The notes under the pieces are model-generated. The model was given only the letters and a program-made list of their open reading frames with translations. It made no database searches and was not told the DNA's origin. From sequence record MT366760.1: DNA of 64,000 bases. One strand, given 5' to 3'. Each line of letters opens with the position of its first letter. Position 1 is the first letter of the stretch. A program made the translations under genes and the position numbers. Shown piece by piece: positions 27,226 through 57,496 of this stretch.

Positions 27226-28200
27226 TTAAATTTGGTAGAACGCGCCCTTATCTAAACCCTCAGAGATATAGACGGATGATACACCTAGCTCACGGAACTG
27301 AGCTTTATATTTGTCTGCGACGTAAGCGACAATACACTCGATTGTTGTCTCTTCAGGTAGAATCAAGTAGTCCTGCTCGATGTGCAACTTGAATACACCA
27401 CGAGACTTAGATGTGTATTGAACTAGGGTACGTGAACCCTCTTTCTTACCTTCAGTAATGTTACAACGGGCAACTAGATATTTACCATCCAAGAACTCGG
27501 ATACTTTACGAGTCAGGCGGTCTAGCTGAGCTTTGTATTCACTGGACGCGAAGTTCTCATGAATACCTACCAGTTGGATAAAGGACTTATGCCCGTGCAT
27601 GATGTTCTGACAACCATAGGAAGTGCTGTCCTTTAAACCGTGCGTATACGTCACTGGATATGCCTGAGTCAACACCCATCCACGAACGTCTTGTGGTGTA
27701 ACGTGGTTGAAAGCCCAGATAAGTGATACTTTGATTTCAAAGTCAGGGAATTGCTCGTTTAACGCACCCTGCAACCAACGCTGAATCATCGTCATCGGAT
27801 CTTCGCGGTAGTCACGGTCAAATTCCAACACGTGTACAGCGTGCGCGTCTGCTTCGATGTACGTATCATTCAGAGTGGTTAACTGGACTGCTTTAACCGC
27901 CTTTGAACCCTTCTGCTTTTTATTGAAGTAGCTAGGTTCCTCTTTACAACCGACTACTTTGTCTACAACCTTAAACGCAAGCAGTTTGTGGTCGATACCA
28001 GTTTCTGGGTCATCAATGAACTTTTTGATGTCTTTCTTAATTGTAGAGAAGTCAACTACAACGGATTCTTCTTCATCAATCTTGCCCGTGATGTGGATAC
28101 GAGGTGACACTGAAAACCCAGTACAAATACCTTCACTGTTAATATATGCCCCATCAATAACAGTTACGTTATGAAGGAACATTGATGCTGTCTTACTCAT
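27226..28200 (-). CDS. queD: two-domain (long-form) 6-carboxytetrahydropterin synthase QueD-like
   Basis: VVDFS.IKK.IK..ID...DHKLL in domain 1, YTHGLK...CQNIMHGH.S metal motif in domain 2 and PEETTIE; long form as recalled for Vibrio/Shewanella. Confidence 0.8.
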   Translation of the reverse strand: MSKTASMFLHNVTVIDGAYINSEGICTGFSVSPRIHITGKIDEEESVVVDFSTIKKDIKKFIDDPETGIDHKLLAFKVVDKVVGCKEEPSYFNKKQKGSKAVKAVQLTTLNDTYIEADAHAVHVLEFDRDYREDPMTMIQRWLQGALNEQFPDFEIKVSLIWAFNHVTPQDVRGWVLTQAYPVTYTHGLKDSTSYGCQNIMHGHKSFIQLVGIHENFASSEYKAQLDRLTRKVSEFLDGKYLVARCNITEGKKEGSRTLVQYTSKSRGVFKLHIEQDYLILPEETTIECIVAYVADKYKAQFRELGVSSVYISEGLDKGAFYQI

Positions 28201-28222
28201 TGGTTAGTCCTTTCTATTAGAA

Positions 28223-28885
28223 TTACAAAGTGTTAAGGTAGCTAGTAGCACTATTAGTGGAGGTTGTGAACCACCCACCCTCCGTGTCAGCGTCGCGCAT
28301 ACGTAGTTCGTTACCTTCGAGTAGTTCTAGTACTCGGTTAAGAACTTTAGCTTCATGACGCATTCGATACCAATTATTTACAGTCTCTTGGCGTTTGACC
28401 TTAAGCACATTTAGGTAGACGAAAGCGGAGGCTTTGGTAGTGTCTACTTTGATCTTACGTAGTGCCTTGTTGTACTTGATGTTAGAACGGTATTCCTTAC
28501 GCTTAGCTTGGTACAACGAATTTAGGTTACGTTCCATACAGGACGACATAACTTCGAATACGTCTCTTGTATCGTTAACATTCAATTCGTTCATTGCCTG
28601 AACGAATAGAGCTTCAAGGTTAGCTAGTGCTTCACGGTCGGATTCTGGTGTGGAATAAAACGCCCACTTGGTTTCGTCTTCCAGTTCTTCCATAGCCCAG
28701 TTAAGGTCAGCCATTTTCTTTTCAGCGTCTTCCCTTAGTTCGCTACGGGCACCAACCAACTTATCAGGGTGGTACTGATTAGCTAGACGACGGTAGGCTT
28801 TCTTTAAAGACTCTTTGGTAACTGTAGAAGGATCTGTGATTCCAAGTATCTTGAACGGGTCACGACGTTGTTGCTGATTACTCAT
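28223..28885 (-). CDS. J-domain (DnaJ-like) protein
   Basis: DPFKILGI...LKKAYRRLANQYHPDK...KMADLN.AMEEL with an intact HPD. Confidence 0.88.
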   Translation of the reverse strand: MSNQQQRRDPFKILGITDPSTVTKESLKKAYRRLANQYHPDKLVGARSELREDAEKKMADLNWAMEELEDETKWAFYSTPESDREALANLEALFVQAMNELNVNDTRDVFEVMSSCMERNLNSLYQAKRKEYRSNIKYNKALRKIKVDTTKASAFVYLNVLKVKRQETVNNWYRMRHEAKVLNRVLELLEGNELRMRDADTEGGWFTTSTNSATSYLNTL

Positions 28886-29366
28886 CGTCGCTCTCCTTTA
28901 TTTTAAGCACGCCCGTAAGACCACGCACTGGTTTTTCAATAACCTGTGGTGCATCATTCCCACCGTCGCCAACGTAAGTACTTCTAGATTCATGTATACC
29001 AACTGAGTAAACCGTGTTTTCGTGCACGTCAGGTTGGCGTTGGAAGTTGCAGCCCTTAATACTTTGAACGTCACCAGGGTTTAGAAGTGGGTTACCGTTA
29101 GGGTCAAGCAATTTGCTGTACCCAAGGAACTCCCAATCATCCTGTGGCTTATCTTTGTCTTCTAGGTACAGGGCAACATAACCCATAGCGTCCTTCTCGC
29201 TGATACCCTCAACAGTTGACGCATCAACACCAACTAGGAAGATAGTAGCTTCTTCCCCATTACGCTTGTTGGCTTCTTCTGCTACTTGAGCAGCTAGGTC
29301 AACTTTGTCTTCACGTTGTGGGTATTCACCCGTAAGGCTTGCTAGTAACTTTGCAGCAGTCTTCAT
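28878..29366 (-). CDS. hypothetical protein
   Basis: 162-aa ORF. Confidence 0.7.
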   Translation of the reverse strand: MKTAAKLLASLTGEYPQREDKVDLAAQVAEEANKRNGEEATIFLVGVDASTVEGISEKDAMGYVALYLEDKDKPQDDWEFLGYSKLLDPNGNPLLNPGDVQSIKGCNFQRQPDVHENTVYSVGIHESRSTYVGDGGNDAPQVIEKPVRGLTGVLKIKESDDE

Positions 29367-29959
29367 GATCTTTTTCCTTTACGTTTCTTCTTGCGGGGTT
29401 TATAACCATCCATATAACTCTTTAAGTCTTCGGATACATGGTTAAGTTTGATCTGAGTAGTTTCTACTCGTGTAGGTGACGTTTTAATTGTGAGCAAGTT
29501 AGCCCATTGATTAACATCGTCCTTATTGGTTGTGGCAAACACCACTTCACCATCCAAGGTTAGTAAGTGGATTGAATTCTCAAGTTCACCGAGTGGGTCA
29601 AGTGTCATCATGCGATTCAGATACTTGATAGCTTTAACACGCTTCTCTCGGGTTTGGAATTCAGTTAAGCTTATTAACTGACGTAAGGCAAATAACCAAC
29701 GTTGTGAAAGAATAGGGCAACGTTTCAAGTCTGCAAAGTAGGTGTCAGCGGATGGTCGGAAGTGTGGTGGTACGTGCGACTCCTCAACGATTGCTTTAAT
29801 ACGTTTAACATTAGACTTGATACGTTTAATCTCGCCCTTAGGTATTTTATTCACGGGGAACATCCTCGAAGTTGGGGTTAACCCGAACGCATCCATCCAA
29901 GAGTGGTTAGCTGATTCATCTTTCTTGAATGGGCGTATAGGTTTTCTATACCGATTCAT
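29363..29959 (-). CDS. hypothetical basic protein
   Basis: 198-aa ORF. Confidence 0.7.
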   Translation of the reverse strand: MNRYRKPIRPFKKDESANHSWMDAFGLTPTSRMFPVNKIPKGEIKRIKSNVKRIKAIVEESHVPPHFRPSADTYFADLKRCPILSQRWLFALRQLISLTEFQTREKRVKAIKYLNRMMTLDPLGELENSIHLLTLDGEVVFATTNKDDVNQWANLLTIKTSPTRVETTQIKLNHVSEDLKSYMDGYKPRKKKRKGKRS

Positions 29960-29960
29960 A

Positions 29961-30542
29961 CTAGATACCTAGTTGGCGTTTCCAGAAATGGTAGGGTGTC
30001 TTCTTGTACTGCAACCAAACACCGTGCTTCATGAAGTAATCTACTGTCCAACGGAACCGCAGAGGCATTCGCATTGTATCAGTACCCAATCCAAGGTCAC
30101 CCGCCATACTCTTCTCAACCTCCAACACAATCGGGTAACTACGTGTCATCTCATCAGCTATTGCTACTTGCGAACCCTGTTCAGGATTAATTACTGTGAG
30201 CGGAATCTTTTGAGCTAATGAGAAGTAGATATTGTGGGGTATAAGGACAGCAGTCACACGGTGAGCGTAATACTGGTCTGGTGTGATACCATCTCCACCA
30301 TAACTACCACTGTATAATAAGCCTGTGCTACGGTTGTGCACTAGAGCATTGAACGCAATAAAGTTCTCACACGCGATGTCGTAACCTTCTTCGTACTCAC
30401 CGTTTAACTTACGGTGAACAACCTCACTCGGGGATAGGGGTATAAAAGAGATACTGTCACCTTCGTTCATCATACCCACTGACTTTTCGTTAAGGATGAA
30501 AAGCTTGTTTACTTTGATTTCTGGTTTGTCTTGAGTCATCAT
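29961..30542 (-). CDS. hypothetical protein
   Basis: Start reassigned to MMTQDK at 30542, downstream of hairpin H5. Confidence 0.65.
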   Translation of the reverse strand: MMTQDKPEIKVNKLFILNEKSVGMMNEGDSISFIPLSPSEVVHRKLNGEYEEGYDIACENFIAFNALVHNRSTGLLYSGSYGGDGITPDQYYAHRVTAVLIPHNIYFSLAQKIPLTVINPEQGSQVAIADEMTRSYPIVLEVEKSMAGDLGLGTDTMRMPLRFRWTVDYFMKHGVWLQYKKTPYHFWKRQLGI

Positions 30543-30566
30543 AATCGTTACTCTTGGTTGGTTGAT

Positions 30567-30601
30567 ATAATCGGATGCCCTCTTAGAAGACATCCTGTTA
30601 T
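30567..30601 (-). other. conserved intergenic RNA hairpin H5
   Basis: ATAACA-GGATGTCTTC-TAA-GAGGGCATCC-GATTAT, 2 nt after the stop at 30604. Confidence 0.7.
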
Positions 30602-30603
30602 AT

Positions 30604-31065
30604 CTAGATACGGGGTAGATCTAACTCATCTAGTATAGGATTAGTAATGTTCAGGTAAACTATCCAGTTGACGATTATCACAAGCATCAGGGGTAATACT
30701 AACTTCGGCTCGTGCACAAAACCCATAAGGATAACAATCACGTCCTTACATATAGACATCTTGGTTAAGTGATACGCTTCGTATAAACAGTATTCTTGGT
30801 TATCTTCTCTTGATTGTGCAAACCAACGAACAACACCTACTGTCTCTAATACTAAAACCACTAACAACGTGGATACCCATATATCAGCGTTGAATTCGAA
30901 TATCCAATCTGAAATTCTACATAGTAGCGCGTAGACAATTAGGGTAGCGAAAGCTAGTTGAAAGCTTCTGAACCATCCGTATTGGTCTTTGACTTTATGC
31001 TTAATAATAATCATCTTATTTACCTCGGTAGGGATTCTGTTTAGTGAAGTATCGACACTTATCAT
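30604..31065 (-). CDS. hypothetical multi-pass membrane protein
   Basis: About four hydrophobic segments; start probably MIIIK. Confidence 0.65.
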   Translation of the reverse strand: MISVDTSLNRIPTEVNKMIIIKHKVKDQYGWFRSFQLAFATLIVYALLCRISDWIFEFNADIWVSTLLVVLVLETVGVVRWFAQSREDNQEYCLYEAYHLTKMSICKDVIVILMGFVHEPKLVLPLMLVIIVNWIVYLNITNPILDELDLPRI

Positions 31066-31753
31066 TTACACATTCCCTGTCAGTGTAGTGTAAGTGTTTT
31101 CCTATCTTGCCAAGTGGTTTTAGGTAGGGTTCCCAATCTGGTGCTTTTCTACCAAGACCATACTGTGCTGACGGTGACCAGAAGTGATTAGACTTAGTAG
31201 ACCTTTTGATGTAACCATCATAGAGACCACTAGCGAAATACTTTATCTCCAACCATGCAGCAGCATCAATTGGATTATCAAAGATTGGCGTCGCCCAAAA
31301 TTCGTCATTGTCTCGGATTAACTTGGTTAACTGTCTAAGGTCGTCCTTAATTGATTCGTATTGCGCACGGGATAATAACACCGAACACGTGTCGTCCTTG
31401 TATACCCGCGAGTCACGTAAGTCATCAGTTCGATTAAGAATAGAACTGCCAATAGCAATTATCCCCTGAGCAGTGTCATCCCTTGATTCACCATACATCC
31501 CCAAGGATAAACAAGCTATTTCTTTCTCGCGTTTTAACTCGGAGGGGGTTAACACGGTTGGGGTGGATGCAGCCACTTGAGGAGCGGCAACCATAGGCTC
31601 CTGTGGCAACGTTTCGTATTCAGTCGGTTGGTTAACTGTGAATTCAGTAAAATCACGTACAGTGACATCTGATGCGTCTACCGCAATGTCAACTACCAGA
31701 CCTATTTCCATAATAATTAAAGCAGCTAGTGCTACCTTTCTCTTATTCATCAT
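31016..31753 (-). CDS. SleB/Hydrolase_2-family cell-wall hydrolase with N-terminal anchor
   Basis: CLSLGMYGESR...AIGSSILNR...CSVL...QYES...HFW...PDW...IGKHLHY. Confidence 0.8.
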   Translation of the reverse strand: MMNKRKVALAALIIMEIGLVVDIAVDASDVTVRDFTEFTVNQPTEYETLPQEPMVAAPQVAASTPTVLTPSELKREKEIACLSLGMYGESRDDTAQGIIAIGSSILNRTDDLRDSRVYKDDTCSVLLSRAQYESIKDDLRQLTKLIRDNDEFWATPIFDNPIDAAAWLEIKYFASGLYDGYIKRSTKSNHFWSPSAQYGLGRKAPDWEPYLKPLGKIGKHLHYTDRECVNDKCRYFTKQNPYRGK

Positions 31754-31781
31754 ATTAATCTAACCCTTGTGTGGTTTGTCC

Positions 31782-31817
31782 ATAATCGGGGGCACTCCTA
31801 TGAATACCCTCTGTTAT
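31782..31817 (-). other. conserved intergenic RNA hairpin H6
   Basis: ATAACA-GAGGGTATTC-ATAG-GAGTGCCCCC-GATTAT (one mismatch), 2 nt after the stop at 31820. Confidence 0.65.
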
Positions 31818-31819
31818 GC

Positions 31820-32599
31820 CTAAACCTCGTACAGTATGAACGGGATGTTCTTACCGGAGCGGAAACATTTACCAGACATTTGTTGGATTTGACTGTAATA
31901 TATGTCTGATGTTCCATGTGGTATCAGACATATAACTTCCGAAAATGTATCTCGGATGTCGTAGCCTATTGACCACTGACGTAGGTTACCGATTACACAC
32001 TCCAGTCCCTGAACGATTGGTTCCTTTTCTACTAGTACACTGTGGGGTGATGCCGTGTACGGGTAGAACCCCCTAGTCTCAGCAACAACCTTAACTGCTT
32101 CACCCATGTCTGGGAGTGGTGTAACGATTAGGGCTTTAGCTAGATGGTGATTAACCAATTTATCCTTAACTAGAAGTCTATCCCAAGTACCCGTAATAGG
32201 TGAACACTTTGAGGTGCGTTCCTTCGATTCGTGTCCACGCTCACCCGTTAAGATATAGTTACAGTTGATGGTGTAGGGTTTACCGTATTCCACTGTGGTA
32301 CTAGCAACAACCTTATCTTGGTTCTTGTTGATGTTGTGTAGCTTGTTGAACATATGTTCAAGAGCCTGACCCAATGAAGAACCCTCGCCATACGCAACAA
32401 CAGGGTTATCAGTCTCACTACAGATGTAAACACACTCACCCATCTTACCGCGCTTGTCTAAACCAAACATCTTAATAGCTACGTGTTGGTTAGCAGTCGG
32501 ATCTTCTAGTTGATACTTACGCGTAACCTCGATAACAAGACCCTGACGTTGTGTCTCTTCGATGACACGTTCCATAATACCTTTAATTGGAGTAAACAT
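31820..32599 (-). CDS. hypothetical protein
   Basis: 259-aa ORF. Confidence 0.7.
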   Translation of the reverse strand: MFTPIKGIMERVIEETQRQGLVIEVTRKYQLEDPTANQHVAIKMFGLDKRGKMGECVYICSETDNPVVAYGEGSSLGQALEHMFNKLHNINKNQDKVVASTTVEYGKPYTINCNYILTGERGHESKERTSKCSPITGTWDRLLVKDKLVNHHLAKALIVTPLPDMGEAVKVVAETRGFYPYTASPHSVLVEKEPIVQGLECVIGNLRQWSIGYDIRDTFSEVICLIPHGTSDIYYSQIQQMSGKCFRSGKNIPFILYEV

Positions 32600-33165
32600 T
32601 ATTTGTTCTCCTTAGTTACCAAGATTTGTTCAAGTTGTGGGCGGATAGATTCAACATCAATGTCGTCGGCAACTGGTATCGTACCTTCTAATACACCAGT
32701 GACCACACGACGCATACTAGCTAGGGTAGCTTGCTGAGTAGTGATAAGTTCCTTATCAGCTTTGCGCTTATTATTCAAGTTGTCTACCGTCTCGCGAAGT
32801 GAACACATTGCCTTATTGTTCCTATCGTGAGCCAGTAGTTGGATTGCTCTAGAAGCTTCATCCGACACTAGGAATTCAATGTTAGATAACATTGCGTCTT
32901 TAGTTACACCGTCAATAGTGTCGTTCTCGTCTAGTCCTTCGTAGGCAGCATTGATAACGTCACGCATTGCTCCTGCGCGGTATTCACCTAGCTTGCGCAT
33001 AACACATAACATGTGCATCTGAGCGTTGTGGCTCAAGGTGATAATTTTAAGGAATGGGATCTTAGTTGTAACAACTGGTTTATCTAGGTCACCAACCAAA
33101 CAGCTTTTCTTGCGTGATAGTTGGAATGGGTTGATAGATAGTTCAACGAGTCGTAGCTTAGCCAT
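32599..33165 (-). CDS. hypothetical protein
   Basis: Start MAKLRL after GGAGAATACGATT. Confidence 0.65.
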   Translation of the reverse strand: MAKLRLVELSINPFQLSRKKSCLVGDLDKPVVTTKIPFLKIITLSHNAQMHMLCVMRKLGEYRAGAMRDVINAAYEGLDENDTIDGVTKDAMLSNIEFLVSDEASRAIQLLAHDRNNKAMCSLRETVDNLNNKRKADKELITTQQATLASMRRVVTGVLEGTIPVADDIDVESIRPQLEQILVTKENK

Positions 33166-33190
33166 AATCGTATTCTCCAAGTAATTAAGC

Positions 33191-33838
33191 TTATTTTGTT
33201 TCAGTACTTTCGTAACGTTTCTTAAGTTGTAGATAAAGTTCGTGTTCTTCTTTCTGTGCACGGTTCAGCTCGTAGAAGTATTTAGCAGCTAAACGCAGTG
33301 CAGCTTTAGTCTTGTGGGAACTGACAGCAACCGGTACCTCAATAGCGAATTCATCGTCCTCGCTAATGATGATGTTATTTTCAGTGATGGTGGAAAGGTC
33401 TACCACATCTGATTTAGCTGTCTTTCTGACGTGTTCTGCTAACGCGTTAACTAGGGCAGTAAATTGTGCTAGGTTATATTCACACGGCAACTTATCAAAA
33501 GCGTCTAGGACAAAGCGGGGAATTTCTTCAGTACAACTACCGCTATTGGAAGCGACCAAACGTGAACCTTGTAGGATGAAACGTTGGACAGTTGTATTAG
33601 GTATCATCATCCAAAACTCAGTACCTTCGGAGACTTCTACACTCACACAATCCCACACAGCGCGAGCATTAATACTGGATGTATCCTTAAGCGTGAATAG
33701 TGGTTCAAATATGGAAACCTTGTCTCGTGAGATAAACCATTCAATCATATCACACGACAATTTGTTATCTGGAAGTTTAACCTTATCACTAGGTAGTTCA
33801 AATGTAACACCGGAATTCTTATTCATATTACTCATCAT
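33191..33838 (-). CDS. hypothetical protein
   Basis: 215-aa ORF. Confidence 0.7.
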   Translation of the reverse strand: MMSNMNKNSGVTFELPSDKVKLPDNKLSCDMIEWFISRDKVSIFEPLFTLKDTSSINARAVWDCVSVEVSEGTEFWMMIPNTTVQRFILQGSRLVASNSGSCTEEIPRFVLDAFDKLPCEYNLAQFTALVNALAEHVRKTAKSDVVDLSTITENNIIISEDDEFAIEVPVAVSSHKTKAALRLAAKYFYELNRAQKEEHELYLQLKKRYESTETK

Positions 33839-33839
33839 G

Positions 33840-34079
33840 TTATTTACCTTTTAGTTTCCAACGTGCATCCCAAGGAGCACCAATACCAGTTACTGATTTG
33901 TCCGCATTAAGAATGACGGGACGGTTAGCCCATCGACCTCGGTAAGACACCCCGTCCTCAGCGATACATAAGTAAGTTCTACACTCAAATTCTTCGTGTT
34001 TAGCAGGTCCTGCACCAAAGTAGATGACTACTCGGGGGCAAAAGATAAACGTCAATAGACGTATTAAGTAGTTACGCAT
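33840..34079 (-). CDS. hypothetical protein
   Basis: 79-aa ORF, GGAGAG SD. Confidence 0.6.
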   Translation of the reverse strand: MRNYLIRLLTFIFCPRVVIYFGAGPAKHEEFECRTYLCIAEDGVSYRGRWANRPVILNADKSVTGIGAPWDARWKLKGK

Positions 34080-34098
34080 TTCGACTCTCCATGTAATG

Positions 34099-34134
34099 AT
34101 AATCGGGTGCCCTTATTAAAAGACACCCTGTTAT
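34099..34134 (-). other. conserved intergenic RNA hairpin H7
   Basis: ATAACA-GGGTGTCTTT-TAAT-AAGGGCACCC-GATTAT, 2 nt after the stop at 34137. Confidence 0.7.
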
Positions 34135-34136
34135 TA

Positions 34137-34493
34137 TTACTCCGGAAGTAGTAAGTGCTCAGTTAACATCTGACATAAGTCTTCTTCTATAATTAACAAG
34201 TCTTCTTCAGTTTCTGGGTTCCACGACTTATGCGTATGTACCGCGCAATTCGTATGACCTATGACACTTACCGAACATGATACACCATCACGACCCGATG
34301 AGTAAAGGATTTCAGTAGTGATACCCGCATGGACATCCTGAATACTTAAGCGTTCTGTTACGCTTGTCAGATGTACACGCGACATGTGGTAGCGGTGGTG
34401 AAGGCTGTGTGGAATAGCTAAACGAATGACTTCTGCTGAACGGTCAGTGTCGATGTTAACGATAGCGCCTGAAAGAAAATCTAGAGTTTTCAT
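34137..34493 (-). CDS. hypothetical protein
   Basis: Start MKTLD at 34493, downstream of hairpin H8. Confidence 0.65.
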   Translation of the reverse strand: MKTLDFLSGAIVNIDTDRSAEVIRLAIPHSLHHRYHMSRVHLTSVTERLSIQDVHAGITTEILYSSGRDGVSCSVSVIGHTNCAVHTHKSWNPETEEDLLIIEEDLCQMLTEHLLLPE

Positions 34494-34522
34494 AATCGTG
34501 TTCCTTTTTGTCTTCTGAGTAA

Positions 34523-34558
34523 TTAATCGGATGCCCTTATTAAAAGACATCCTGTTAA
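34523..34558 (-). other. conserved intergenic RNA hairpin H8
   Basis: TTAACA-GGATGTCTTT-TAAT-AAGGGCATCC-GATTAA, abutting the stop at 34559. Confidence 0.7.
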
Positions 34559-34828: not shown

Positions 34829-34868
34829 GATCTTGTCCTTGGTGGAAAGTATTTGTTTTCGTATGTCC

Positions 34869-34897: not shown

Positions 34898-34902
34898 ATT
34901 TA

Positions 34903-34909: not shown

Positions 34910-34923
34910 AGAGCCTAAAGTAG

Positions 34924-40181: not shown

Positions 40182-41249
40182 CTAGAAGGACGGTACAAAA
40201 CTAATTGATGCACCATATTGTAGGTCACGCCAGTCATCGGCATCTGTACCCGCTACCGTTAGCTTGACAGCGTAGTTACCACCATCGTGGACAGCACCTA
40301 GTGCTAGACCATTGTGGTCTCGGTAGTGACCAACACCAACACCGAAGGATAGTGTACCATCATAGTTAGAAGGCATAACGATAGAGTTAGCAGCAGCATT
40401 AGCAGCCTGCATACCATCTAGTCGGTTGATGTCTTCTTTAAGTCCAACGATGTCATTTTCTACTTTACCCATGCGACCTTCCAACGAACTCAAACGTGAG
40501 CCGTGCTTCTGGAGTGTTGCTGATTGGGAATTACCCATGGCGTAAAGCTCTTCAATTGACGTATATTGATTAGCGTCAACCTTAGCTTGTTCCGCTTTAT
40601 ATGCTGATACAACTTCATCAGAATACTGCTTAGATGATTTCAGCGTTGTTGTATTACCCTTAGATACTTCTTGGTCAGTATATGTTTTAGAAGAATCTAA
40701 GGTAGCTGCGTCACCCTCATCAATTGCTTTTTGGATAGCATCACCCTTAGTGACTCCCGCTGATGAAGGAAAGTTTTTGAACTGGTTATTGATTTCCTCA
40801 ATAACAATGTTGTCAGCATACGTCTTAGATTTCTCTAGTGTAGCAAAGTCCCCTGATTCAGCGTGTGCTTTTGCTTCAGCTAGATTATTAGCGTCTTGTT
40901 GCTTAGCTGTACTGATAGCAGCATTAAGAACATTAGCGTCACCCGCATCAGAATATGCTTTAGCTTGAGTCAACGTATCAGCGTCGCCCTTAGCTCGTGC
41001 TTTTTCTTCTGCGGTTAAATCGGAACCTAACTTAGCTAGGGCTTTGTTGTGTTCCTTGATGTTATTCATGTTGTTGTTTGCAATCACCGTAGCACTACGG
41101 ATGTTCTTTGAGTTACGATAGACTCGGAAGTCTTGTTCACCCTGACTTTCTTTGAACTCTTTCTGAGTTACGAATTGGTCAGCGGCATTAGCAGCAGGGA
41201 TTGTAATTGTAGCTGCAATAAGAAGTGAAAGAATGCTTAGGATACGCAT
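40182..41249 (-). CDS. YadA-like trimeric autotransporter adhesin
   Basis: Signal peptide MRILSILSLLIAATITIPAANA; stalk repeats GDAxTLxxAKxYxD; anchor GMQAANAA...FGVGVGHYRDHNGLALG...YGASISF; C-terminal Phe. Confidence 0.85.
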   Translation of the reverse strand: MRILSILSLLIAATITIPAANAADQFVTQKEFKESQGEQDFRVYRNSKNIRSATVIANNNMNNIKEHNKALAKLGSDLTAEEKARAKGDADTLTQAKAYSDAGDANVLNAAISTAKQQDANNLAEAKAHAESGDFATLEKSKTYADNIVIEEINNQFKNFPSSAGVTKGDAIQKAIDEGDAATLDSSKTYTDQEVSKGNTTTLKSSKQYSDEVVSAYKAEQAKVDANQYTSIEELYAMGNSQSATLQKHGSRLSSLEGRMGKVENDIVGLKEDINRLDGMQAANAAANSIVMPSNYDGTLSFGVGVGHYRDHNGLALGAVHDGGNYAVKLTVAGTDADDWRDLQYGASISFVPSF

Positions 41250-41330
41250 TTTAATTTCCTCAGTATGTTGGTCTAATTTGATTTTATATTCTGAATAGAC
41301 AACCAATATACTAATTCTTCTTATGTGGAG

Positions 41331-49785: not shown

Positions 49786-50439
49786 TTATAAACCTTTATA
49801 ACGAGTAGAGGGAAGGTGAATCTTGAAGTTAAGTGGATAACGTAACTTCTCTGAAAATACTTTAACTGGGTCAAGCCCACATGAAATTAGTATACGTGGG
49901 ACATCTGAGTACAATTCTAAAATATCCCTGCACTTCTCTATTTTCTGCTGTGTAGCATGTTCGTCCTTTTCATCGGACAATGGGAAGTTACAGAGGATAA
50001 TCAACTTGGGTTTCTTATGTGACGGAAATGAATGGTCACGGAGTTTATCTTTATAGGAACCCGTTAGGTGGTGCCACCATATCTTATGGTAGGCATCCGG
50101 TTCTAATTCCAACGCTCGTAGTGCAATCTTAGCTGCAACCATTTTGGCGCGTAGGTCGGATAGTTGACCTGTTATGCACATGGTATAAGGAACAGCTAGT
50201 GGATTACGCATAACTGTATCAAAGTCTTTAAGTTGTTCCTTAGCGGAGACACGGTGGGGTAATAAACCCTTACCACTAGAAGTAAACTGCCCTACGTCTT
50301 CTGACAAGTTAAAGGGTTTAGCTAGTTGTAATTGGTTTACGTCCGCGCCACAACCACCTAGACGTTGAAAGTCTAAGTCGTTTCTATCAGGCATTATTAT
50401 CTGGTAGGCTAGGCGGGACTTCTTATCTTTCTTAGCCAT
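49786..50439 (-). CDS. hypothetical protein adjacent to dnaB
   Basis: 217-aa ORF; alpha/beta pattern, possibly a degenerate P-loop fold. Confidence 0.6.
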   Translation of the reverse strand: MAKKDKKSRLAYQIIMPDRNDLDFQRLGGCGADVNQLQLAKPFNLSEDVGQFTSSGKGLLPHRVSAKEQLKDFDTVMRNPLAVPYTMCITGQLSDLRAKMVAAKIALRALELEPDAYHKIWWHHLTGSYKDKLRDHSFPSHKKPKLIILCNFPLSDEKDEHATQQKIEKCRDILELYSDVPRILISCGLDPVKVFSEKLRYPLNFKIHLPSTRYKGL

Positions 50440-50473
50440 TGCTTTCCCTTTTTGGTTAATATTATCAACGTTA

Positions 50474-50480
50474 ATTTACA
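50474..50480 (-). promoter_or_regulatory. TGTAAAT box
   Basis: After a terminator; 35 nt upstream of the operon leading to dnaB, terL and portal. Confidence 0.5.
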
Positions 50481-50494
50481 GTAATTCGAAGAGC

Positions 50495-50522
50495 AAAATG
50501 CCCCGAATTAACGAGGCATTTA
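50495..50522 (-). terminator. intrinsic terminator
   Basis: TGCCTCG-TTAATT-CGGGGCA-TTTT; the core is identical to the nrdG terminator. Confidence 0.75.
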
Positions 50523-50528
50523 ATATAA

Positions 50529-50804
50529 TTACTTCATTCTCAAGTACCACATGGGTTGGGTAAGAGTGAAGTGAAACCAAAGGAACTTAACCATGTATTG
50601 ACCACGCCTTGGGGATACATAATACCATGGAGTTTTCTCATATTCACACGTAACCCAAACCATAGGTCTGAACTGGATGAAGAGTGCACCGAGTAAACTA
50701 GTGTGAATCGTCAGCTTGTTAACCTGACACCAGTTCACTGATACTTCAAACACGTAAGGGATGTTAAGATGGAACAACGTGATTATCTGTGACATAAACA
50801 ACAT
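50529..50804 (-). CDS. hypothetical small aromatic-rich protein
   Basis: 91-aa ORF filling the gap; ATG overlaps the helicase stop region. Confidence 0.5.
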   Translation of the reverse strand: MLFMSQIITLFHLNIPYVFEVSVNWCQVNKLTIHTSLLGALFIQFRPMVWVTCEYEKTPWYYVSPRRGQYMVKFLWFHFTLTQPMWYLRMK

Positions 50805-50805
50805 A

Positions 50806-53679
50806 TTAGAACCTCAATTTCTTAGTAGGTTTCTTCTTACCGTGTTCAGCTTTAGTTGGTTTGTATTGGTCGTCTGGGTCACCGGAACGGCTACCTTTGT
50901 TTTTCAACTCACCAAATACTTCACCCAAGGTTTCTCTAGACTTCTTATGAAGTTTGTAGTCCTTAAGTGTTTTCCAACATGTGGCGAAACAACCTAGTGC
51001 TAATCCCCATGTCTCATCAACGTATGCCCTGATAATAGGTTGGCACTTGCCTTCCATCGGAGTCATAACCCTAGTTACTTCCTGAGTGTAGTTAGGAACG
51101 TTTGAGATTGGGATGATTGTATAGATAGCACTCCAGAGTGGCACGTTAACACCAGTCAGCATAGACCTCATTGCAACCGTACAGCGATATGTACCATCAC
51201 GCAGGGAATCAAGTACGTCCTTACGCTTGTGCTTAGGTATACGACCTGTGAACGCCAACGCTATTTGTTCTTCGTCCCCGTCCCATTGCTCATTAACCAT
51301 GTCTACTAGGAGATTGGCGTGAGCTTGGAAAGTCACGGGAATGATAACGGAGTGACCCTTCTTCATGTCCTTAATGGCTTGGTCAACTATCATCTGGTTA
51401 CGGTCTTTATGTTCCGACAGATGTTTCATTGCACTTTGCCATTGCTGATAGTTCTTCTTAGCAATGCCAGTCTTATGGATATGAGTAACTGGCGTCATAG
51501 TCTCGACTTTACACTCGTAAGCTATCTTACCAAAGATTCGGTCAGTAACTGGATACTTACCATCCTTACGGTCGGGTGTACCCGTCAGTCCATAGAAGTG
51601 CATAGCGTTGAACTGGCTAAGAATATTTGAGTAACCGTCAGCAGGAGCCTTATGGATTTCGTCAACAATGATGACCTCAAACAGGTCACGGACTTTCTTC
51701 AACTTTTTCTTACCACCGTTCTGGGGTAGAAACATTTGATAAGTCGCTAGACAGATATCGTACTTATGGAAGTCTGCTACACTGTTACAAATCCCACACA
51801 ACTTTACCCCGTTGAACTTCTCCACGTCTTTAACGTCAGTCATTTCCTGAAACGTTTCGTAGAACTGGTCAATCAAGTCAGATTGGTGAGCAAGTATAAG
51901 AGTCTTTGCACGTTTTTTACACGTCAGAGCTGTAGCCATAACTGTGTTGTGTACTCGTAGACCGTTAGCCGTGAAATTGTGGACGTCATCAACCGTTAGG
52001 TCATATACCGTTGTGGGTTCCTCATTGGTGTGGACGCAGGTTACAGTGTCAAAGCTCATTGAACCACTACATGAAGCAAGAGTTAACATACGGGCTTCTT
52101 CCTCATCCGCGAAGTCCCAGAGTAATCCAAGTTCTTCAACGATGCGGCGGATATCCCCGTGTGTTGCAGTAGGTGTAACGTTACGCTTTTTAACGTTCCT
52201 TTCCCACCAAGTCCATTTAAGCTTCTTATCCACTAACCACTTACCAAGCCCAGGGATAACTTTTCTCAATGGATTGATACCACAGGGTTGAGGTGTCCAT
52301 AGATGGTAGTTGTCACCCGTCTTTATCTTAAGCGCTTCGACGGCTCTAGCATAGTCTTCCTTACCTAAGACTAGTGACCAACCGTGAGTGATACCTGCTA
52401 GTGGGTCAACTAGACACTTATCTAGAGAACAGTCAACTCCAAAGTTACCAAGCATTATCTGAATTATTTTAAGCTTGTCTCTACAGTCATCACGTAGTTC
52501 AATGTAGGAACCTTCTACGCTGAACTTGGCTGCTTGTGCAAACCACGCTCTTAAGTAACGTTGCTGACCATACTTGTTAGTCTGCATAACTACGTCGGGT
52601 ACTTTAGTGACGAAGCCCTGATTCAACATCAGATATTTGAATGTTCGATATTTAATTCGAACAATGTTAGTTCCCTTCATATGGAAAGGTTTGTATTTGA
52701 ACATCAACTCAATGAGAGTAATAAAGCGTTTGACCAATGCTTCATTATAGACCGTTGATGAATTATGACGACCTAGTGCAAGTGTCACGTCATCTTTAGG
52801 GTCGTGGTCGTGCGTGTAGTGTGCTTCTGCATAACCAGTGTATAGTAGTAGTTCAGCTAGTTCTGGCTTACACTTACGGGGATAGAAATTAGGTGTCTTA
52901 GGTGGTAGGTTAACAGTACTAGCAACTTTGGGAAATAGATAGTTACCTAGTTCACCAATAATAGTGTCACCCTCTTTGACTTCATCCAAACGGCACCATT
53001 CAAGAGCCATGTTTGGGCGTAGTATTTGTACAGGGTGTTCGGGTGTCCCAGTTACTTTACGACCACGACTGGTCTTTAGAGTAACAGTAGTTTCTGCTCG
53101 CTTCTTATGCAGGTGGGTAACACGACCAGTGTGCACAGGGTTGTCAGTACGGACACGTAGTTTAGACTCTTCCGAAAGTTCACGTGAATGACCTTCCTTA
53201 TGTTTCGGACTAAACATCTTTTCAATCGGGATTAGTCCGTGGTTGGTATGAATCAACGTACCCTCAACCACACATTTACCGGAACGAGGCGGTGCTTTTA
53301 AAACGCCATTACCCGATTTGATAAGTGACTTAACAGCAGGACCTTGGTACTTACGCAAGTCGAATAGGAAGCTAATCTTTTTACGCATTCTTTGAATAGT
53401 TCGTTGGTCGTTGTTCTTAAGTGCTTTGTCAAACATCTTAGGCTTTTTCAAGCAGCGCTTAATCAAGTCAGGACGACCCATCGGGATACCACACCAACGT
53501 TCACCCTTCTTCTTCTCAATCAGATAGAGTTTGATGATGTCGATTTGTGCTTCTTCATAGTATTCGTTTTCAACGTGGCTCTCGCCCATTTCTAAAACGA
53601 AGTGTTTCTTAATCTGGGATACTAGGACTTCCGATACGGGAATCCAGAAACGGTTGTTTTTAATATACGGTTTAGCCAT
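50806..53679 (-). CDS. SF2 (UvsW-like) helicase precursor containing an intein
   Basis: APPRSGK|...|TVMA (split Walker A), IIVDEIH, GLTGTPDRKDG, TGVNVP and Q..TRVM. Confidence 0.85.
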   Translation of the reverse strand: MAKPYIKNNRFWIPVSEVLVSQIKKHFVLEMGESHVENEYYEEAQIDIIKLYLIEKKKGERWCGIPMGRPDLIKRCLKKPKMFDKALKNNDQRTIQRMRKKISFLFDLRKYQGPAVKSLIKSGNGVLKAPPRSGKCVVEGTLIHTNHGLIPIEKMFSPKHKEGHSRELSEESKLRVRTDNPVHTGRVTHLHKKRAETTVTLKTSRGRKVTGTPEHPVQILRPNMALEWCRLDEVKEGDTIIGELGNYLFPKVASTVNLPPKTPNFYPRKCKPELAELLLYTGYAEAHYTHDHDPKDDVTLALGRHNSSTVYNEALVKRFITLIELMFKYKPFHMKGTNIVRIKYRTFKYLMLNQGFVTKVPDVVMQTNKYGQQRYLRAWFAQAAKFSVEGSYIELRDDCRDKLKIIQIMLGNFGVDCSLDKCLVDPLAGITHGWSLVLGKEDYARAVEALKIKTGDNYHLWTPQPCGINPLRKVIPGLGKWLVDKKLKWTWWERNVKKRNVTPTATHGDIRRIVEELGLLWDFADEEEARMLTLASCSGSMSFDTVTCVHTNEEPTTVYDLTVDDVHNFTANGLRVHNTVMATALTCKKRAKTLILAHQSDLIDQFYETFQEMTDVKDVEKFNGVKLCGICNSVADFHKYDICLATYQMFLPQNGGKKKLKKVRDLFEVIIVDEIHKAPADGYSNILSQFNAMHFYGLTGTPDRKDGKYPVTDRIFGKIAYECKVETMTPVTHIHKTGIAKKNYQQWQSAMKHLSEHKDRNQMIVDQAIKDMKKGHSVIIPVTFQAHANLLVDMVNEQWDGDEEQIALAFTGRIPKHKRKDVLDSLRDGTYRCTVAMRSMLTGVNVPLWSAIYTIIPISNVPNYTQEVTRVMTPMEGKCQPIIRAYVDETWGLALGCFATCWKTLKDYKLHKKSRETLGEVFGELKNKGSRSGDPDDQYKPTKAEHGKKKPTKKLRF
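51946..53274 (-). mobile_element. intein, 443 aa, with degenerate LAGLIDADG endonuclease domain
   Basis: Starts CVVEGT right after the P-loop Lys; block B GTPEHP; block F VYDLTV..VHNF; ends VHN before Thr. Confidence 0.9.
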
Positions 53680-53698
53680 ATTAAAATTCTCTCGGCAG

Positions 53699-54211
53699 TT
53701 AGCCATCTCTCAGTGCGAGTTCTATACCTTGCATAGCCAGTTTTAATGCCCATGCGGTTTTATCAATGTCCTCAATAACGTCATCACATAGTTCAACTAA
53801 TGAGGAAAACCCATCGACTAATCTTTGTGCTCGTTGCATCGACGGTAGCGAGCTTATTACGGACTCCTTTTCTGATTTGGTATTATACGGCTTGAGGATT
53901 GATGCGCTATACTTACCTAGCATAGACGAATGGACAATACCAAAGGCACTGTCCACTGCATTTAACTGCAAACGCACTTCACTTCTAATCTCTACAATCC
54001 TAGAACGGAACGCGATGTCTTGTAATGAGGCTTTGTTGATTTTAGATGAGGATATACCACGCTTCACACCAAGCAATCTGGACTTACGTGAAGCGTGTGT
54101 ACGTTGCACTTCCTCAAGCAAACTTTTTGGATTCAGCGTACAACCTTCTAGGATGTTTTCTAGTTTGCGGTAATCCGAATCTTTCTTAAGTTGCTTCAAG
54201 GGGTTTGCCAT
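53699..54211 (-). CDS. UvsY-like recombination mediator (candidate)
   Basis: TKSEKESVIS and LVELCDDVIEDIDKTAWALK align with recalled T4 UvsY EKSEMKTVLS and LLDFCSGALDAIKSRGFAIK; adjacent to a UvsW-like helicase. Confidence 0.45.
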   Translation of the reverse strand: MANPLKQLKKDSDYRKLENILEGCTLNPKSLLEEVQRTHASRKSRLLGVKRGISSSKINKASLQDIAFRSRIVEIRSEVRLQLNAVDSAFGIVHSSMLGKYSASILKPYNTKSEKESVISSLPSMQRAQRLVDGFSSLVELCDDVIEDIDKTAWALKLAMQGIELALRDG

Positions 54212-54951
54212 TAAAGTTTGTCTCCAAGTAAACGGAAGAACTCGTCTTTGTATGTTGGGTTTTCACGGTAACAGCCACGCATAACACTAGTGATAGTATC
54301 TGCGTCTGGTTCTTCTACACCGCGAACTGACATACATTGGTGTTCTGCTCGAACAACAACTGCGATACCTTCACACTCTAATAGATCTTCGAGTGCATCA
54401 GCAATTTGACTAGTTAGTTCTTCTTGGATTTGTGGGCGACGTGCAATGTGGTTAACGAGGCGGCTAAATTTGGATAGACCGATAACCTTGCCGTCTTCTT
54501 TAGGCATTACAGCGATGTGGCAAACGCCACGGATGTTCTGGATATGGTGTGAGCACATAGATTCTACACGGATACTACGAACCATAATCATCTGGTCTAA
54601 GTTAGATGCGTTAGGGAACTCAGTAATACGTGGTAACTCTTCATAGCGACCAACCATCGTTTCATTAAGGAACATCTTAGCCATACGGTGTGGAGTGTCC
54701 TTAGTGTTGTGGTCGTTTTTAACGTCAATCATTAGCACGTTGAAGAGGTTAGCACATGCGTCTTCAGTAGCTCGCATCATTTCTTCTTGGATTTCTTCAG
54801 TTATCCAAGCTGATATGTTGTCGTTCGCTTTGAAGTCAACCCCATTTTTGATGAGGTGTTCACGTAGTGCAAGGAGTTTCGGATACTTCTCTAGAATCGT
54901 TGTGTTCTGTGAGAAGTCTCTTGGGTTTTCCACTGGTTCTGGTGTGCACAT
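54211..54951 (-). CDS. folE: GTP cyclohydrolase I
   Basis: TPHRMAK, SMCSHH, GLSKFSR, RPQIQE and HQCM..RG. Confidence 0.95.
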   Translation of the reverse strand: MCTPEPVENPRDFSQNTTILEKYPKLLALREHLIKNGVDFKANDNISAWITEEIQEEMMRATEDACANLFNVLMIDVKNDHNTKDTPHRMAKMFLNETMVGRYEELPRITEFPNASNLDQMIMVRSIRVESMCSHHIQNIRGVCHIAVMPKEDGKVIGLSKFSRLVNHIARRPQIQEELTSQIADALEDLLECEGIAVVVRAEHQCMSVRGVEEPDADTITSVMRGCYRENPTYKDEFFRLLGDKL

Positions 54952-54964
54952 TTGAGTTAAGCTC

Positions 54965-55357
54965 CTATAAGTTACGAGTAATGTTGTTCTCGTATTCTTC
55001 AGAAAGTATAAGTAGAGAGCCTTGGTCGTTGGCGTATATCAGTAAACCTGGAACGTCAGCAACTAAGAAGCTTTCCGTAGTTAGTAATTCGTCCTTTGTA
55101 CTAGGTCGCGGGACTACAATTACATTGTGATGGTGGTTGGAGCAAGCAGGTACATGGAATATGTAACCCACATGGACACCATCTTCGCCTAGACAGATAT
55201 CACGTATCTGTATGTTGTTTACGTAATCCAATTCAAGGGGAGTAACGTATAAGTCGAACCCCTCAATGGGTTCCCGTAGCAAGTACACAATTACGCCCTT
55301 GGATAAGGACGTAAAGGTATGCAGTTGGATACCCGATAGTTCACGAATATCCAACAT
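54965..55357 (-). CDS. hypothetical protein
   Basis: 130-aa ORF in the operon. Confidence 0.65.
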   Translation of the reverse strand: MLDIRELSGIQLHTFTSLSKGVIVYLLREPIEGFDLYVTPLELDYVNNIQIRDICLGEDGVHVGYIFHVPACSNHHHNVIVVPRPSTKDELLTTESFLVADVPGLLIYANDQGSLLILSEEYENNITRNL

Positions 55358-55359
55358 AA

Positions 55360-56511
55360 TTAGTTAAGAAGTAGAGTTACGTAGGTCGCTGTGTATTTCT
55401 CAGTAGCGTCCTGACACCAAATGATGTTTTCGTCCTTCACGTGGAAGTCGATTTTACCTTTTGATGAATAAGCGTTTAGACAGTCACTTAGCAAGTGTTG
55501 GTTAAGGATTAGAGTTGAACCCTTCTTACCCTTAACTTTCTCTACTGGCGGGTAATCGTTAACTTCACCGAAACCAGTCTTCAAGTGGAAGTGTACATCG
55601 TCTTTACCAAAGATCAGTTCACAACCAACACCCTCTTCGTGTACGGAGTTGATGTTGTCTAGTGTGATGTCTAAGTCATCCTGACCAATGGTGAATGATG
55701 CATCAGACTTCTTAGGTGATAGACTGGTACATAGACCGATAACGTCTTCGATTGTTTGCTCGCGGTCGTTGTCCTGAAGTAGTGGCATAACAATACGGAA
55801 GAAGTCATTGTGTGCACGGATAGTTGATGAACCTACAACGATGTCGTACGCTTCACCATCGGACAGATCGTTGATGGTGGTAAATGTAGAGAACGGTAAG
55901 TTGAACTCTAGCTTAGTGCTGAACTTCATATCACCATATTCACACAGTGAGATATGATAGTCATCGAACACGGCTGTACGTAGACCTTTCTTATCAGCTA
56001 CAACCCATAGGTCAAGTTCGTTACCCTCAAAGATATCCGTGATGCCTACTTTAGATACTGCATCTGAAATAGCAGTTTGCATCGCGTTGTCCAACTCAAG
56101 ATCGTTTTCTGAGTCTTCTTCTTTGAACGTAATTTCTTCCCCAGGGACTGCCATGAAGTTACCGTTGTATTTACGGTTGTTGTTAGCTTTCGATTCGAAG
56201 AACACTTGGGAATCGTCCACTTTCTTTTTCTTGCCTTCTGGCTCACCGAAAGTCAAACAAATCTCTTTACGTCCACGTAGCAATCCGTTAAGAACACCCG
56301 TATCAAAGCCGAATTCAGTTAGACCTGAACCTGATTCAATTGTACCAGTCAGCACAACTTCAATCGAAACTTCTTTACCGGTAGCTCGACATACCACTAC
56401 GGTAGTCTTCTTTTCTTTCTTCAATGCGATTACAGCATTGTTGTTACCTGTCAGGGCTTTCACAGTTTTAATTGCGGTGCCCAAGGATTTACTATCTAGT
56501 GTGATTTGCAC
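55360..56511 (-). CDS. beta-clamp (DnaN)-like sliding clamp
   Basis: 383 aa with a three-domain alternating beta/alpha pattern; D.YHI, FG...V.G and LN..LL.D.L resemble DnaN; near the polymerase gene. Confidence 0.6.
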   Translation of the reverse strand: MQITLDSKSLGTAIKTVKALTGNNNAVIALKKEKKTTVVVCRATGKEVSIEVVLTGTIESGSGLTEFGFDTGVLNGLLRGRKEICLTFGEPEGKKKKVDDSQVFFESKANNNRKYNGNFMAVPGEEITFKEEDSENDLELDNAMQTAISDAVSKVGITDIFEGNELDLWVVADKKGLRTAVFDDYHISLCEYGDMKFSTKLEFNLPFSTFTTINDLSDGEAYDIVVGSSTIRAHNDFFRIVMPLLQDNDREQTIEDVIGLCTSLSPKKSDASFTIGQDDLDITLDNINSVHEEGVGCELIFGKDDVHFHLKTGFGEVNDYPPVEKVKGKKGSTLILNQHLLSDCLNAYSSKGKIDFHVKDENIIWCQDATEKYTATYVTLLLN

Positions 56512-56544
56512 TACTAAGTCCTCTTAGTGTATGTTATAAGTTAT

Positions 56545-56551
56545 ATTTACA
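56545..56551 (-). promoter_or_regulatory. TGTAAAT box
   Basis: 34 nt upstream of the clamp gene. Confidence 0.5.
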
Positions 56552-56563
56552 GGAATCTATTGG

Positions 56564-57496
56564 TCAGGTATTCAGCTCATTTCCGAACAAATCGCAGTGG
56601 ATTCTTGGGGAATAGGAGAACCCGCGCTCCATTGCTAAGTCAGCTACCTTACGTTGGATAGCTGCTTGTTGGTCGGATGTTGCACCTACTGGCATGACGT
56701 ACATACGGCAATTTGTGTTCTTGGTGTTAAGACCACCCTTATCCGTATAAGCGAACATGAACTCTTCTGCTTCATCAAAGTCTTCTTCTAAAGGACGTAC
56801 TACGAACTTGAAACTAATCATGTTAGAGATCCACAGTTGTGCATCAATGACTTTAGGTCGTAGTGTACGGCTACGCTTTTCACCAGAGTGTGATAGTTTA
56901 GGTGAGTTAGACCAAAGTAGTTCTCGTTTGTCTCTATCAGAGGATAACCACGCACCCATCAACTTGCGGAATCTATCGTTGGGTGCAATGCTACCGTTGG
57001 TTTCGATAGTGATACGAGACGGTGCGTAACGCAAGTCACAAGTAGGAGAGAAACCCTCACCGTTCAATTCTAAGCTATCAATGTGATACAGTATATCCAA
57101 GATAGCGTCTTGCTGCATCATTGGTTCACCACCAGTAAAGCAGATGTGAATCGGCATACCGTTAATCATGAACCCGTGGGCGTTGGCAGGAAGTACTTCG
57201 ATAATCTTTTGGGCAATTTCTTCTGGATAGTCTCGCATAGCCAGATGTTTATAGTCGCGGTGCCAACTATAGCGGCTATCACAACCGAGACTGAAATCGT
57301 TACCGCTAAGCTCGCTAATATGCGTAACATCCTTAATAGGTATGTCACCGATTTGACCTTTTTCATTGTTAGAGAATCCGCTGCATGTGAAATTACAACC
57401 GAATAGACGGACGAAGATAGTTGGAACGCCCGTGTAAACGCCCTCACCCTGAATTGAGTAGAATATCTCAGTATAGGGTATCATCTTTGGTGCCAT
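56564..57496 (-). CDS. queE: 7-carboxy-7-deazaguanine synthase (radical SAM)
   Basis: EIFYSIQGEG..TGVPTIFVRLFGCNFTC...CDS, FTGGEP, IETNG, SPK and YSPRIH..LFG. Confidence 0.92.
   Translation of the reverse strand: MAPKMIPYTEIFYSIQGEGVYTGVPTIFVRLFGCNFTCSGFSNNEKGQIGDIPIKDVTHISELSGNDFSLGCDSRYSWHRDYKHLAMRDYPEEIAQKIIEVLPANAHGFMINGMPIHICFTGGEPMMQQDAILDILYHIDSLELNGEGFSPTCDLRYAPSRITIETNGSIAPNDRFRKLMGAWLSSDRDKRELLWSNSPKLSHSGEKRSRTLRPKVIDAQLWISNMISFKFVVRPLEEDFDEAEEFMFAYTDKGGLNTKNTNCRMYVMPVGATSDQQAAIQRKVADLAMERGFSYSPRIHCDLFGNELNT

Follow-up and report, generated by a model that had tools for sequence, protein, structure and literature searches.

Vibrio phage vB_VcorM_GR7B (MT366760.1) probably encodes a complete 7-deazaguanine pathway, of which three genes, folE, queD, and queE, provide the steps from GTP to 7-carboxy-7-deazaguanine (CDG) and lie in the stretch analyzed here, with the remaining genes located outside it. 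This stretch, the window, comprises 64,000 bases and corresponds at 100% identity to bases 1 to 64000 of the record, so that window and genome coordinates are the same. GR7B, a myovirus of Vibrio coralliilyticus RE98, has a genome of 207,758 bp in which the pathway genes are spread over four loci, at 27 kb, 54 to 57 kb, 95 to 103 kb, and 155 to 157 kb. Profile searches that took in all 741 stop-to-stop open reading frames (ORFs) of the genome found one gene per pathway function, two QueC paralogues excepted. An earlier note, made from the window alone, had recognized the three genes and their scattering and had raised the possibility that queC and dpdA are absent from the whole genome. The three genes are indeed real and seemingly intact, all on the minus strand, with hidden Markov model (HMM) matches far beyond chance, and they are dispersed as described: queE lies between polA and the clamp gene, folE apart from it, and queD beside nrdD. 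Likewise, the genome-wide profile searches confirmed that no queC or tRNA-guanine transglycosylase (TGT)-like gene lies within the window. The suspected absence from the entire genome, however, does not hold. Searching beyond 64 kb, as the note had proposed, revealed two QueC-family genes, one ArcS2-like gene, and one TGT-superfamily gene that is a candidate DpdA.

For comparison we used the whole genomes of GR7B, GR11A, and Pseudomonas putida phage Amme-1 and regions of nt-1, PhiXhv-12, NCTB, Motura, JenK1, R10Z, and Mendera. Structure models and searches of large protein libraries were made for the window proteins, and proteins outside the window were compared by HMM, BLAST, and hhalign and by PDB sequence and profile searches. 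The TGT-like gene, by tblastn, and a KamA-family gene considered below were sought in 50,697 phage records.

Judged by its sequence, folE (54211..54951, minus strand) unambiguously encodes a type 1 GTP cyclohydrolase I. The predicted protein of 246 amino acids matches Pfam PF01227 (GTP_cyclohydroI) at 1.1e-52 and 178.6 bits (cut-off, 27), NCBIfam NF006826 at 171.7 bits (cut-off, 162), and PHROG 2197 at 9e-59. It shares 59% identity with its homologue in GR11A and 48% with that in Amme-1, and its position within the surrounding gene block is unchanged in both.

The product of queD (27226..28200, minus strand; 324 amino acids) consists of two T-fold modules and, as sequence and model indicate, belongs to the PTPS/QueD family (COG0720, PF01242), a T-fold with a zinc-binding His triad, a catalytic Cys, and a Glu. 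These residues are all kept in the C-terminal module, where the Pfam PTPS domain covers residues 186 to 323 (37.3 bits; cut-off, 22.4). The spacing from the Cys to the HGH motif is one residue longer than in the usual QueD pattern. The N-terminal module is degenerate: TIGR03367 matches it at residues 34 to 75, it aligns with residues 27 to 63 of Escherichia coli QueD, and the HGH zinc site is replaced by other residues. At least 91 metagenome clusters, mostly from large phage-like contigs, belong to the long QueD family, in which residues of both the N-terminal module (D50 F51 K55 K59 D63 D70 H71) and the C-terminal module (H187 C197 H202 G203 H204 T286 E288) are invariant. An AlphaFold (AF2) model based on the family alignment reached a predicted local distance difference test (pLDDT) score of 92.4 and a predicted template modeling (pTM) score of 0.89. 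Its top Foldseek matches were PTPS and E. coli QueD, each to about half of the model, and two viral proteins match it over the full length. Over its whole length, the GR7B protein also shares 35% identity with the protein of Vibrio phage nt-1 designated QueD by Hutinet et al. In GR7B the gene is flanked by a DnaJ-domain gene and nrdD (24949-27153); in metagenomic T4-like contigs, the long queD stands alone among nucleotide-metabolism genes.

The third gene, queE (56564..57496, minus strand; 310 amino acids), is predicted to encode a phage-type radical S-adenosylmethionine (SAM) CDG synthase. PHROG 2076 ("QueE-like radical SAM") matches the protein over its full length at 1.7e-52, and full-length tblastn matches occur in 250 phage records, many of them labeled QueE. 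The N-terminal signature (the first ~40 residues) is the sole part matched by cellular QueE models and by PDB entries 6nhl, 4njg, and 5tgs. Cysteines C34, C38, and C72 are invariant, and a 33-residue insert separates the second and third cluster cysteines. Both features are common to Vibrio phage R10Z and Stenotrophomonas phage Mendera and thus mark a known phage QueE subtype rather than a peculiarity of GR7B; the motif of JenK1 is compact.

Of the genes outside the window, the canonical queC (genome 101284-102090) is the clearest case, its product matching PF06508 at 204 bits and TIGR00364 at 185 bits (cut-off, 150). A second, divergent QueC paralogue (genome 100500-101204) contains the SGGxDS and CxxCxxC motifs that define the QueC family (2026 QueC-family survey) and, at 92% identity between GR7B and GR11A, is conserved more strongly than any other protein of its cluster. 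The ArcS2-like DUF5591 protein of 335 amino acids (genome 102102-103109) scores 28.2 bits against PF17884 (cut-off, 26) and 9e-12 against the NCBIfam archaeosine synthase alpha model NF040592. Its PC-x3-KPY sequence is kept in GR11A, and the spacing of the Ser and His that follow differs from that of the ArcS motif, PC-x3-KPY-x2-S-x2-H (Cui 2023). The match to nt-1 ArcS2 is only E 2e-4, PDB sequence and profile searches with the protein gave no significant match, and no glutamine amidotransferase (Gat) partner was found among the 741 ORFs.

The only TGT-superfamily protein of the genome (genome 154971-156587; 538 amino acids) was assigned by family profile and motifs. Homologues were detected in 20 of the 50,697 phage records, including GR11A (76% identity), nine P. 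putida jumbo phages (52%), Xanthomonas and Erwinia jumbo phages (37%), and phages NCTB, Burkholderia BCSR5, and Achromobacter Motura; no nt-1-like phage was among the records found. Across six phage lineages, the motifs DSGGFQ, LDxP, HG, YHxLG, and ITSDxS and the zinc site C-x-C-x2-C...H are invariant. Compared with the PDB, the family profile matches the archaeal TGT (arcTGT) 1iq8 best (2e-10), followed by bacterial TGTs, and Pfam detects no PUA domain in the protein, which instead has a lysine-rich tail, with K and R making up 38% of the final 60 residues. Alignment with nt-1 DpdA2 by hhalign gave 94% probability and E 1e-7 over 172 columns of the catalytic barrel; pairwise comparison gave E 2e-5 with 25% identity over 281 amino acids, and hmmsearch gave 8e-7. 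The zinc motif CxCxxC..H sets the two apart, as nt-1 DpdA2 has no CxCxxC. The strongest contextual link of this family to 7-deazaguanine synthesis comes from Motura, where the homologue is embedded in the compact cluster queC-asnB-TGT-x-queE-x-folE. A gene that overlaps the end of the TGT-like gene (genome 156559-157023) encodes a small basic protein showing the pattern C-x-C ... C-x-H; in five lineages it is found downstream of the TGT-like gene, often overlapping it. Pfam returned no match for this protein, the pattern of which we take to resemble a SWIM zinc finger. As far as its sequence tells, the TGT-like protein might form a separate subfamily, set apart by comparison with DpdA1 and DpdA2; none beyond DpdA4 is named in the literature searched, and a 25-kb Campylobacter phage region examined for DpdA3 contained no TGT-like ORF.

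The dispersal over four loci does not seem to reflect decay. GR11A and Amme-1 retain the polA-queE-clamp-small ORF-folE block and the long queD, and also the TGT-like gene, the small gene that accompanies it, and the QueC-family block, which argues for an old, conserved trait of the clade rather than degradation. The gene identities, the kept catalytic residues, the completeness of the set, and the conservation of its layout in relatives can all be read from the sequences.

In the proposed pathway, FolE would convert GTP to dihydroneopterin triphosphate in the first step, and the two-module QueD would act in the second as 6-carboxytetrahydropterin (CPH4) synthase, so that these two enzymes and the phage-type QueE together would yield CDG. 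The canonical QueC would convert CDG to 7-cyano-7-deazaguanine (preQ0), and the TGT-like protein may then swap guanine for preQ0 in duplex phage DNA after replication. The ArcS2-like protein could convert some of the preQ0 to archaeosine (in DNA, deoxyarchaeosine [dG+]), as for ArcS2 and DpdA2 of nt-1. A shield against host restriction is the presumed benefit. The preference for DNA over tRNA as the target, like the predicted base and its level, follows from analogy. Every tested phage with such a gene set had a modified base in its DNA (Hutinet 2019; Cui 2023), and co-expression of ArcS2 and DpdA2 in E. coli gave dG+ (PMC6884629, PMC10516641). A tRNA scan of the GR7B genome found no tRNA genes with a GUN anticodon. 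The three window genes and the remaining set thus support the earlier note in its view of a 7-deazaguanine pathway, with DNA modification as the most likely purpose. Its suggestion of a CDG-derived base is not borne out, since queC, ArcS2-like, and TGT-like genes are all present in the genome; the completeness of the set and its resemblance to that of nt-1 would rather predict preQ0 or archaeosine in the DNA. The note had also described the genome as probably hypermodified. Modification is indeed predicted, but its degree may have been overstated: in the DNA of nt-1, the nearest tested phage, about 0.1% of G is affected (2'-deoxy-7-cyano-7-deazaguanosine [dPreQ0], ~0.11%; 2'-deoxy-7-amido-7-deazaguanosine [dADG], 0.035%; dG+, 0.02%) (Hutinet 2019; PMC6884629, PMC10516641), and heavy modification should therefore not be assumed in GR7B.

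Several observations weigh against a complete pathway directed at DNA. QueD scores far under the NCBIfam equivalog cut-off, and QueE reaches 41 bits where the equivalog model demands 300, so that QueE is best regarded as a member of the phage QueE-like family and not as a cellular equivalog. The Pfam TGT score of the TGT-like protein (24.1 bits) lies under the cut-off of 26.3, BLAST revealed no relation to the tested DpdA proteins, and hhalign with JenK1 DpdA1 gave a nonsignificant 2.9%; the relation to DpdA2 appears to be only distant, at the level of profiles. Given this score and this distance, the substrate of the enzyme, DNA or RNA, and the base it handles are matters that we infer. The second QueC paralogue has no assigned place in the scheme. 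In addition, DpdA2 phages replace just ~0.1% of G, so that any effect could be small, and a search of the literature found no publication on the DNA modification or chemistry of GR7B, GR11A, or the P. putida phages of the same clade (G3).

Among the known systems, the closest in function is that of nt-1 (group 1 of Hutinet 2019), where FolE, a long QueD, a distant QueE, QueC, ArcS2, and DpdA2 provide the same functions as are predicted for GR7B (Hutinet 2019; Cui 2023). The two phages share the long two-module QueD, a queE far from the remaining genes, and the combination of an ArcS core-domain protein, putative in GR7B, with a PUA-less TGT-superfamily enzyme; the cluster-motif insert of QueE, seen in the related Vibrio phage R10Z, likewise links GR7B to the nt-1/KVP40 group. 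In contrast, nt-1 has five of the genes in a single 5-kb cluster rather than at four loci, its DpdA2 is without the zinc motif that the remote GR7B candidate keeps together with its lysine-rich tail, its ArcS2 measures 226 amino acids compared with 335 and has a less full PC-x3-KPY motif, and GR7B has the second QueC paralogue in addition. The Queuovirinae (phages 9g and JenK1, with DpdA1, FolE, QueD, Gat-QueC, and QueE) follow the same pathway logic, and the preQ0 genes of JenK1 lie beside clamp and DNA polymerase genes. However, their QueD is short and single-module, the cluster motif of their QueE is compact, QueC and ArcS2 are replaced by a Gat-QueC fusion, with no homologue of Gat in GR7B, and comparison of DpdA1 with the GR7B protein at the profile level gave nothing significant. 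The TGT homologue of Motura is 25% identical (E 1e-20) and shares the invariant motifs; this system, known from its genes alone, differs in its tight clustering, an AsnB-type amidotransferase, and a QueE with another cysteine spacing. Archaeal arcTGT and ArcS, finally, are the best matches of the TGT-like and DUF5591 proteins among solved structures and NCBIfam models (1iq8, TIGR00432; NF040592), but the archaeal enzymes act on G15 of tRNA and have PUA and other RNA-binding domains that the GR7B proteins lack, and GR7B scores far under the archaeal family cut-offs. Functionally, then, the system is of the nt-1 type; as a family member it is new.

Viewed from the window alone, the phage might stop at CDG for want of queC and make a CDG-derived or unusual base, with the products of 23076-24395 and 54965-55357, which the earlier note had put forward as tailoring or insertion enzymes, completing the modification. 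This would fit a 64-kb window without queC or a TGT-like gene and the position of the GR11A homologue of 23076-24395 directly between thyA and queD, but the canonical QueC, the QueC paralogue, and the ArcS2-like and TGT-like genes outside the window contradict it, and we consider it highly improbable. Nor do the two candidates behave as proposed. The gene at 23076..24395 (minus strand) encodes an acidic ORFan of 439 amino acids with no Pfam, NCBIfam, or PHROG match, and its sole relative among 1.84 billion representative proteins (HMMER) is that of GR11A, at 29% identity against 54 to 63% for the neighboring genes of the two phages. It is missing from the related Pseudomonas phages in which the pathway is retained, including Amme-1, and with this behavior of a fast-evolving ORFan it was rejected as a pathway enzyme. 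The ORF of 130 amino acids between the clamp gene and folE (54965..55357, minus strand) is conserved in position, with 62% identity in GR11A and 25% in Amme-1 and about 20 residues invariant in the three phages, but the comparisons lend no support to its membership in the pathway. It appears to encode a small clade-restricted protein: there is no match in Pfam, NCBIfam, or PHROG, no enzyme-like features are kept across the three homologues, its Cys/His run is not kept in GR11A, and GR11A was the sole match in a search of 5.8 billion proteins. It is weakly similar (E 0.01) to a 119-amino-acid ORF between queE and folE of Motura, and an AF2 model from two sequences was unusable (pLDDT, 41.8). 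Possibly, the que genes might instead be auxiliary metabolic genes that support host queuosine-tRNA or pterin/folate metabolism, in which case the TGT-like protein would act on host tRNA and the DNA would be unmodified. The phage also encodes ThyA and DHFR and hence has a high folate use, the TGT-like protein is closer to the archaeal tRNA enzyme than to any solved DNA enzyme, and phages with DpdA2 carry very little of the modification. QueE and QueC, however, have no role in folate synthesis, the queuosine-specific QueA, QueG, and QueH are not found among the genome annotations, the TGT-like protein carries its lysine-rich tail in place of a PUA tRNA-binding domain, and the tested phages with such a gene set bore the base in their DNA. 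We therefore regard this explanation as unlikely.

A further alternative accepts the pathway and adds to it a lysine-derived decoration. Next to the QueC paralogues lies a trio of genes (genome 95039-99479) composed of a KamA-family radical SAM gene resembling lysine 2,3-aminomutase (95039-96187; TIGR00238, 231.8 bits; cut-off, 199), a gene for an ATP-grasp-like protein of 697 amino acids (96241-98334), and a gene for a protein of 380 amino acids. The KamA protein matches Clostridium lysine 2,3-aminomutase 2a5h at 1e-73, and the residues expected to bind the lysine side chain and pyridoxal phosphate seem aligned, which is a lead only. Conceivably, beta-lysine made by this enzyme is attached to CDG or preQ0 by the ATP-grasp-like protein, the QueC paralogue, or the ArcS2-like protein. 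The KamA gene is situated 4.3 kb from the queC genes with a score above its family cut-off, KamA is very rare in phages (20 of the 50,697 records), it co-occurs with the 697-amino-acid protein in 11 of 11 cases in the clade and also with the 380-amino-acid protein, and no protein of the cluster is better conserved than the QueC paralogue. In archaea, ArcS takes its amino group from lysine, which it transfers to preQ0 (PMC11298593), and such a decoration is therefore conceivable. Other observations speak against it. The adjacency may reflect nothing but a conserved backbone, as topoisomerase and ligase genes flank the block; the similarity of the C-terminal half of the 697-amino-acid protein to the ATP-grasp enzyme PurD is weak and not significant (E 0.13); Amme-1 keeps KamA and this protein without the ArcS2-like gene; in a huge uncultured phage, no que gene lies less than 20 kb from KamA; and in Xanthomonas phages KamA is absent and the TGT-like and ArcS2-like genes are present. 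PDB sequence and profile searches with the 697- and 380-amino-acid proteins gave no significant match, and the trio is confined to GR7B, GR11A, and the nine P. putida jumbo phages. We judge the attachment of beta-lysine doubtful, and it seems similarly improbable that the clade of GR7B and the P. putida G3 phages combines a separate, zinc-site-retaining DpdA-like branch with an undescribed DNA base decorated by this amino acid. The P. putida phages have two divergent QueC-family genes (Amme-1 genome 158682-161010), neither of them near canonical QueC. With FolE, QueD, and QueE also present, those phages are more plausible carriers of a CDG-derived or unusual base than GR7B.

If the proposed pathway to preQ0 or archaeosine is correct, GR7B and its relatives (GR11A, the nine P. 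putida jumbo phages, the Xanthomonas and Erwinia jumbo phages, NCTB, and Motura) would constitute a fifth lineage of large phages that shield their DNA with 7-deazaguanines. The distance of the transglycosylase candidate from the known DpdA types would make it informative on how enzymes with the TGT fold came to act on DNA, and the aminomutase/ATP-grasp-like block offers a concrete lead toward a new derivative. GR7B was isolated for the biocontrol of an oyster and coral pathogen, and modified DNA would affect sequencing, restriction mapping, and resistance to host defenses. More generally, when pathway genes appear to be missing at the edge of a window, the whole genome should be checked before a truncated pathway is inferred.

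The genes around queE and folE place them in a replication context. On the minus strand, polA (57543-60662) is followed by queE, the clamp gene (55360..56511), the 130-amino-acid ORF, folE, an ORF of 170 amino acids, and a SF2/ResIII helicase gene (50806-53706) that contains an intein (Pfam Intein_splicing, residues 161-587, 2e-18). Gaps in this stretch are at most 52 nucleotides (nt), and no terminator-like site was found on the coding strand from polA to the helicase. From the sequence, folE and queE seem to share a transcription unit with the polA, clamp, and helicase genes, and expression of the pathway would then accompany replication. The sliding-clamp-like gene, which separates queE from folE, provides context only and lies outside the pathway; its product matches PHROG 947 ("DNA polymerase processivity factor") over the whole length at 9.7e-5 and is 64% identical to that of GR11A and 36% to that of Amme-1. 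Rfam and tRNA scans of the 64-kb window gave no matches, and there is thus no preQ1 riboswitch there.

Some minor observations concern annotation and neighboring genes. The GenBank start of the clamp gene seems too late, since 264 amino acids are annotated and the match to GR11A spans 383. The same appears true of nrdG (24476-24952, minus strand), annotated with 101 amino acids, as the NrdG activase domain needs an ORF of 158. In GR11A, the annotation splits the homologue of the helicase gene into pieces, between which an ORF lies on the other strand. In GR7B, nrdD and nrdG (24476-27153, minus strand) separate the 439-amino-acid ORFan from queD; in GR11A, where nrdD and nrdG are absent from this place, thyA, the ORFan homologue, and queD adjoin. 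The ORFan overlaps thyA by 22 nt. ThyA itself was considered as a pyrimidine hydroxymethylase and set aside, as it passes the NCBIfam cut-off for thymidylate synthase and the phage encodes DHFR. The sole tRNA-like sequence of GR7B (genome 111562-111646) has an irregular two-base anticodon, and GR11A has a tRNA-Cys in the equivalent region. Elsewhere in the window, a protein of 374 amino acids (40182-41306, minus strand) ends in a YadA-like membrane-anchor domain (PF03895, 1.2e-7), which is unusual in a phage.

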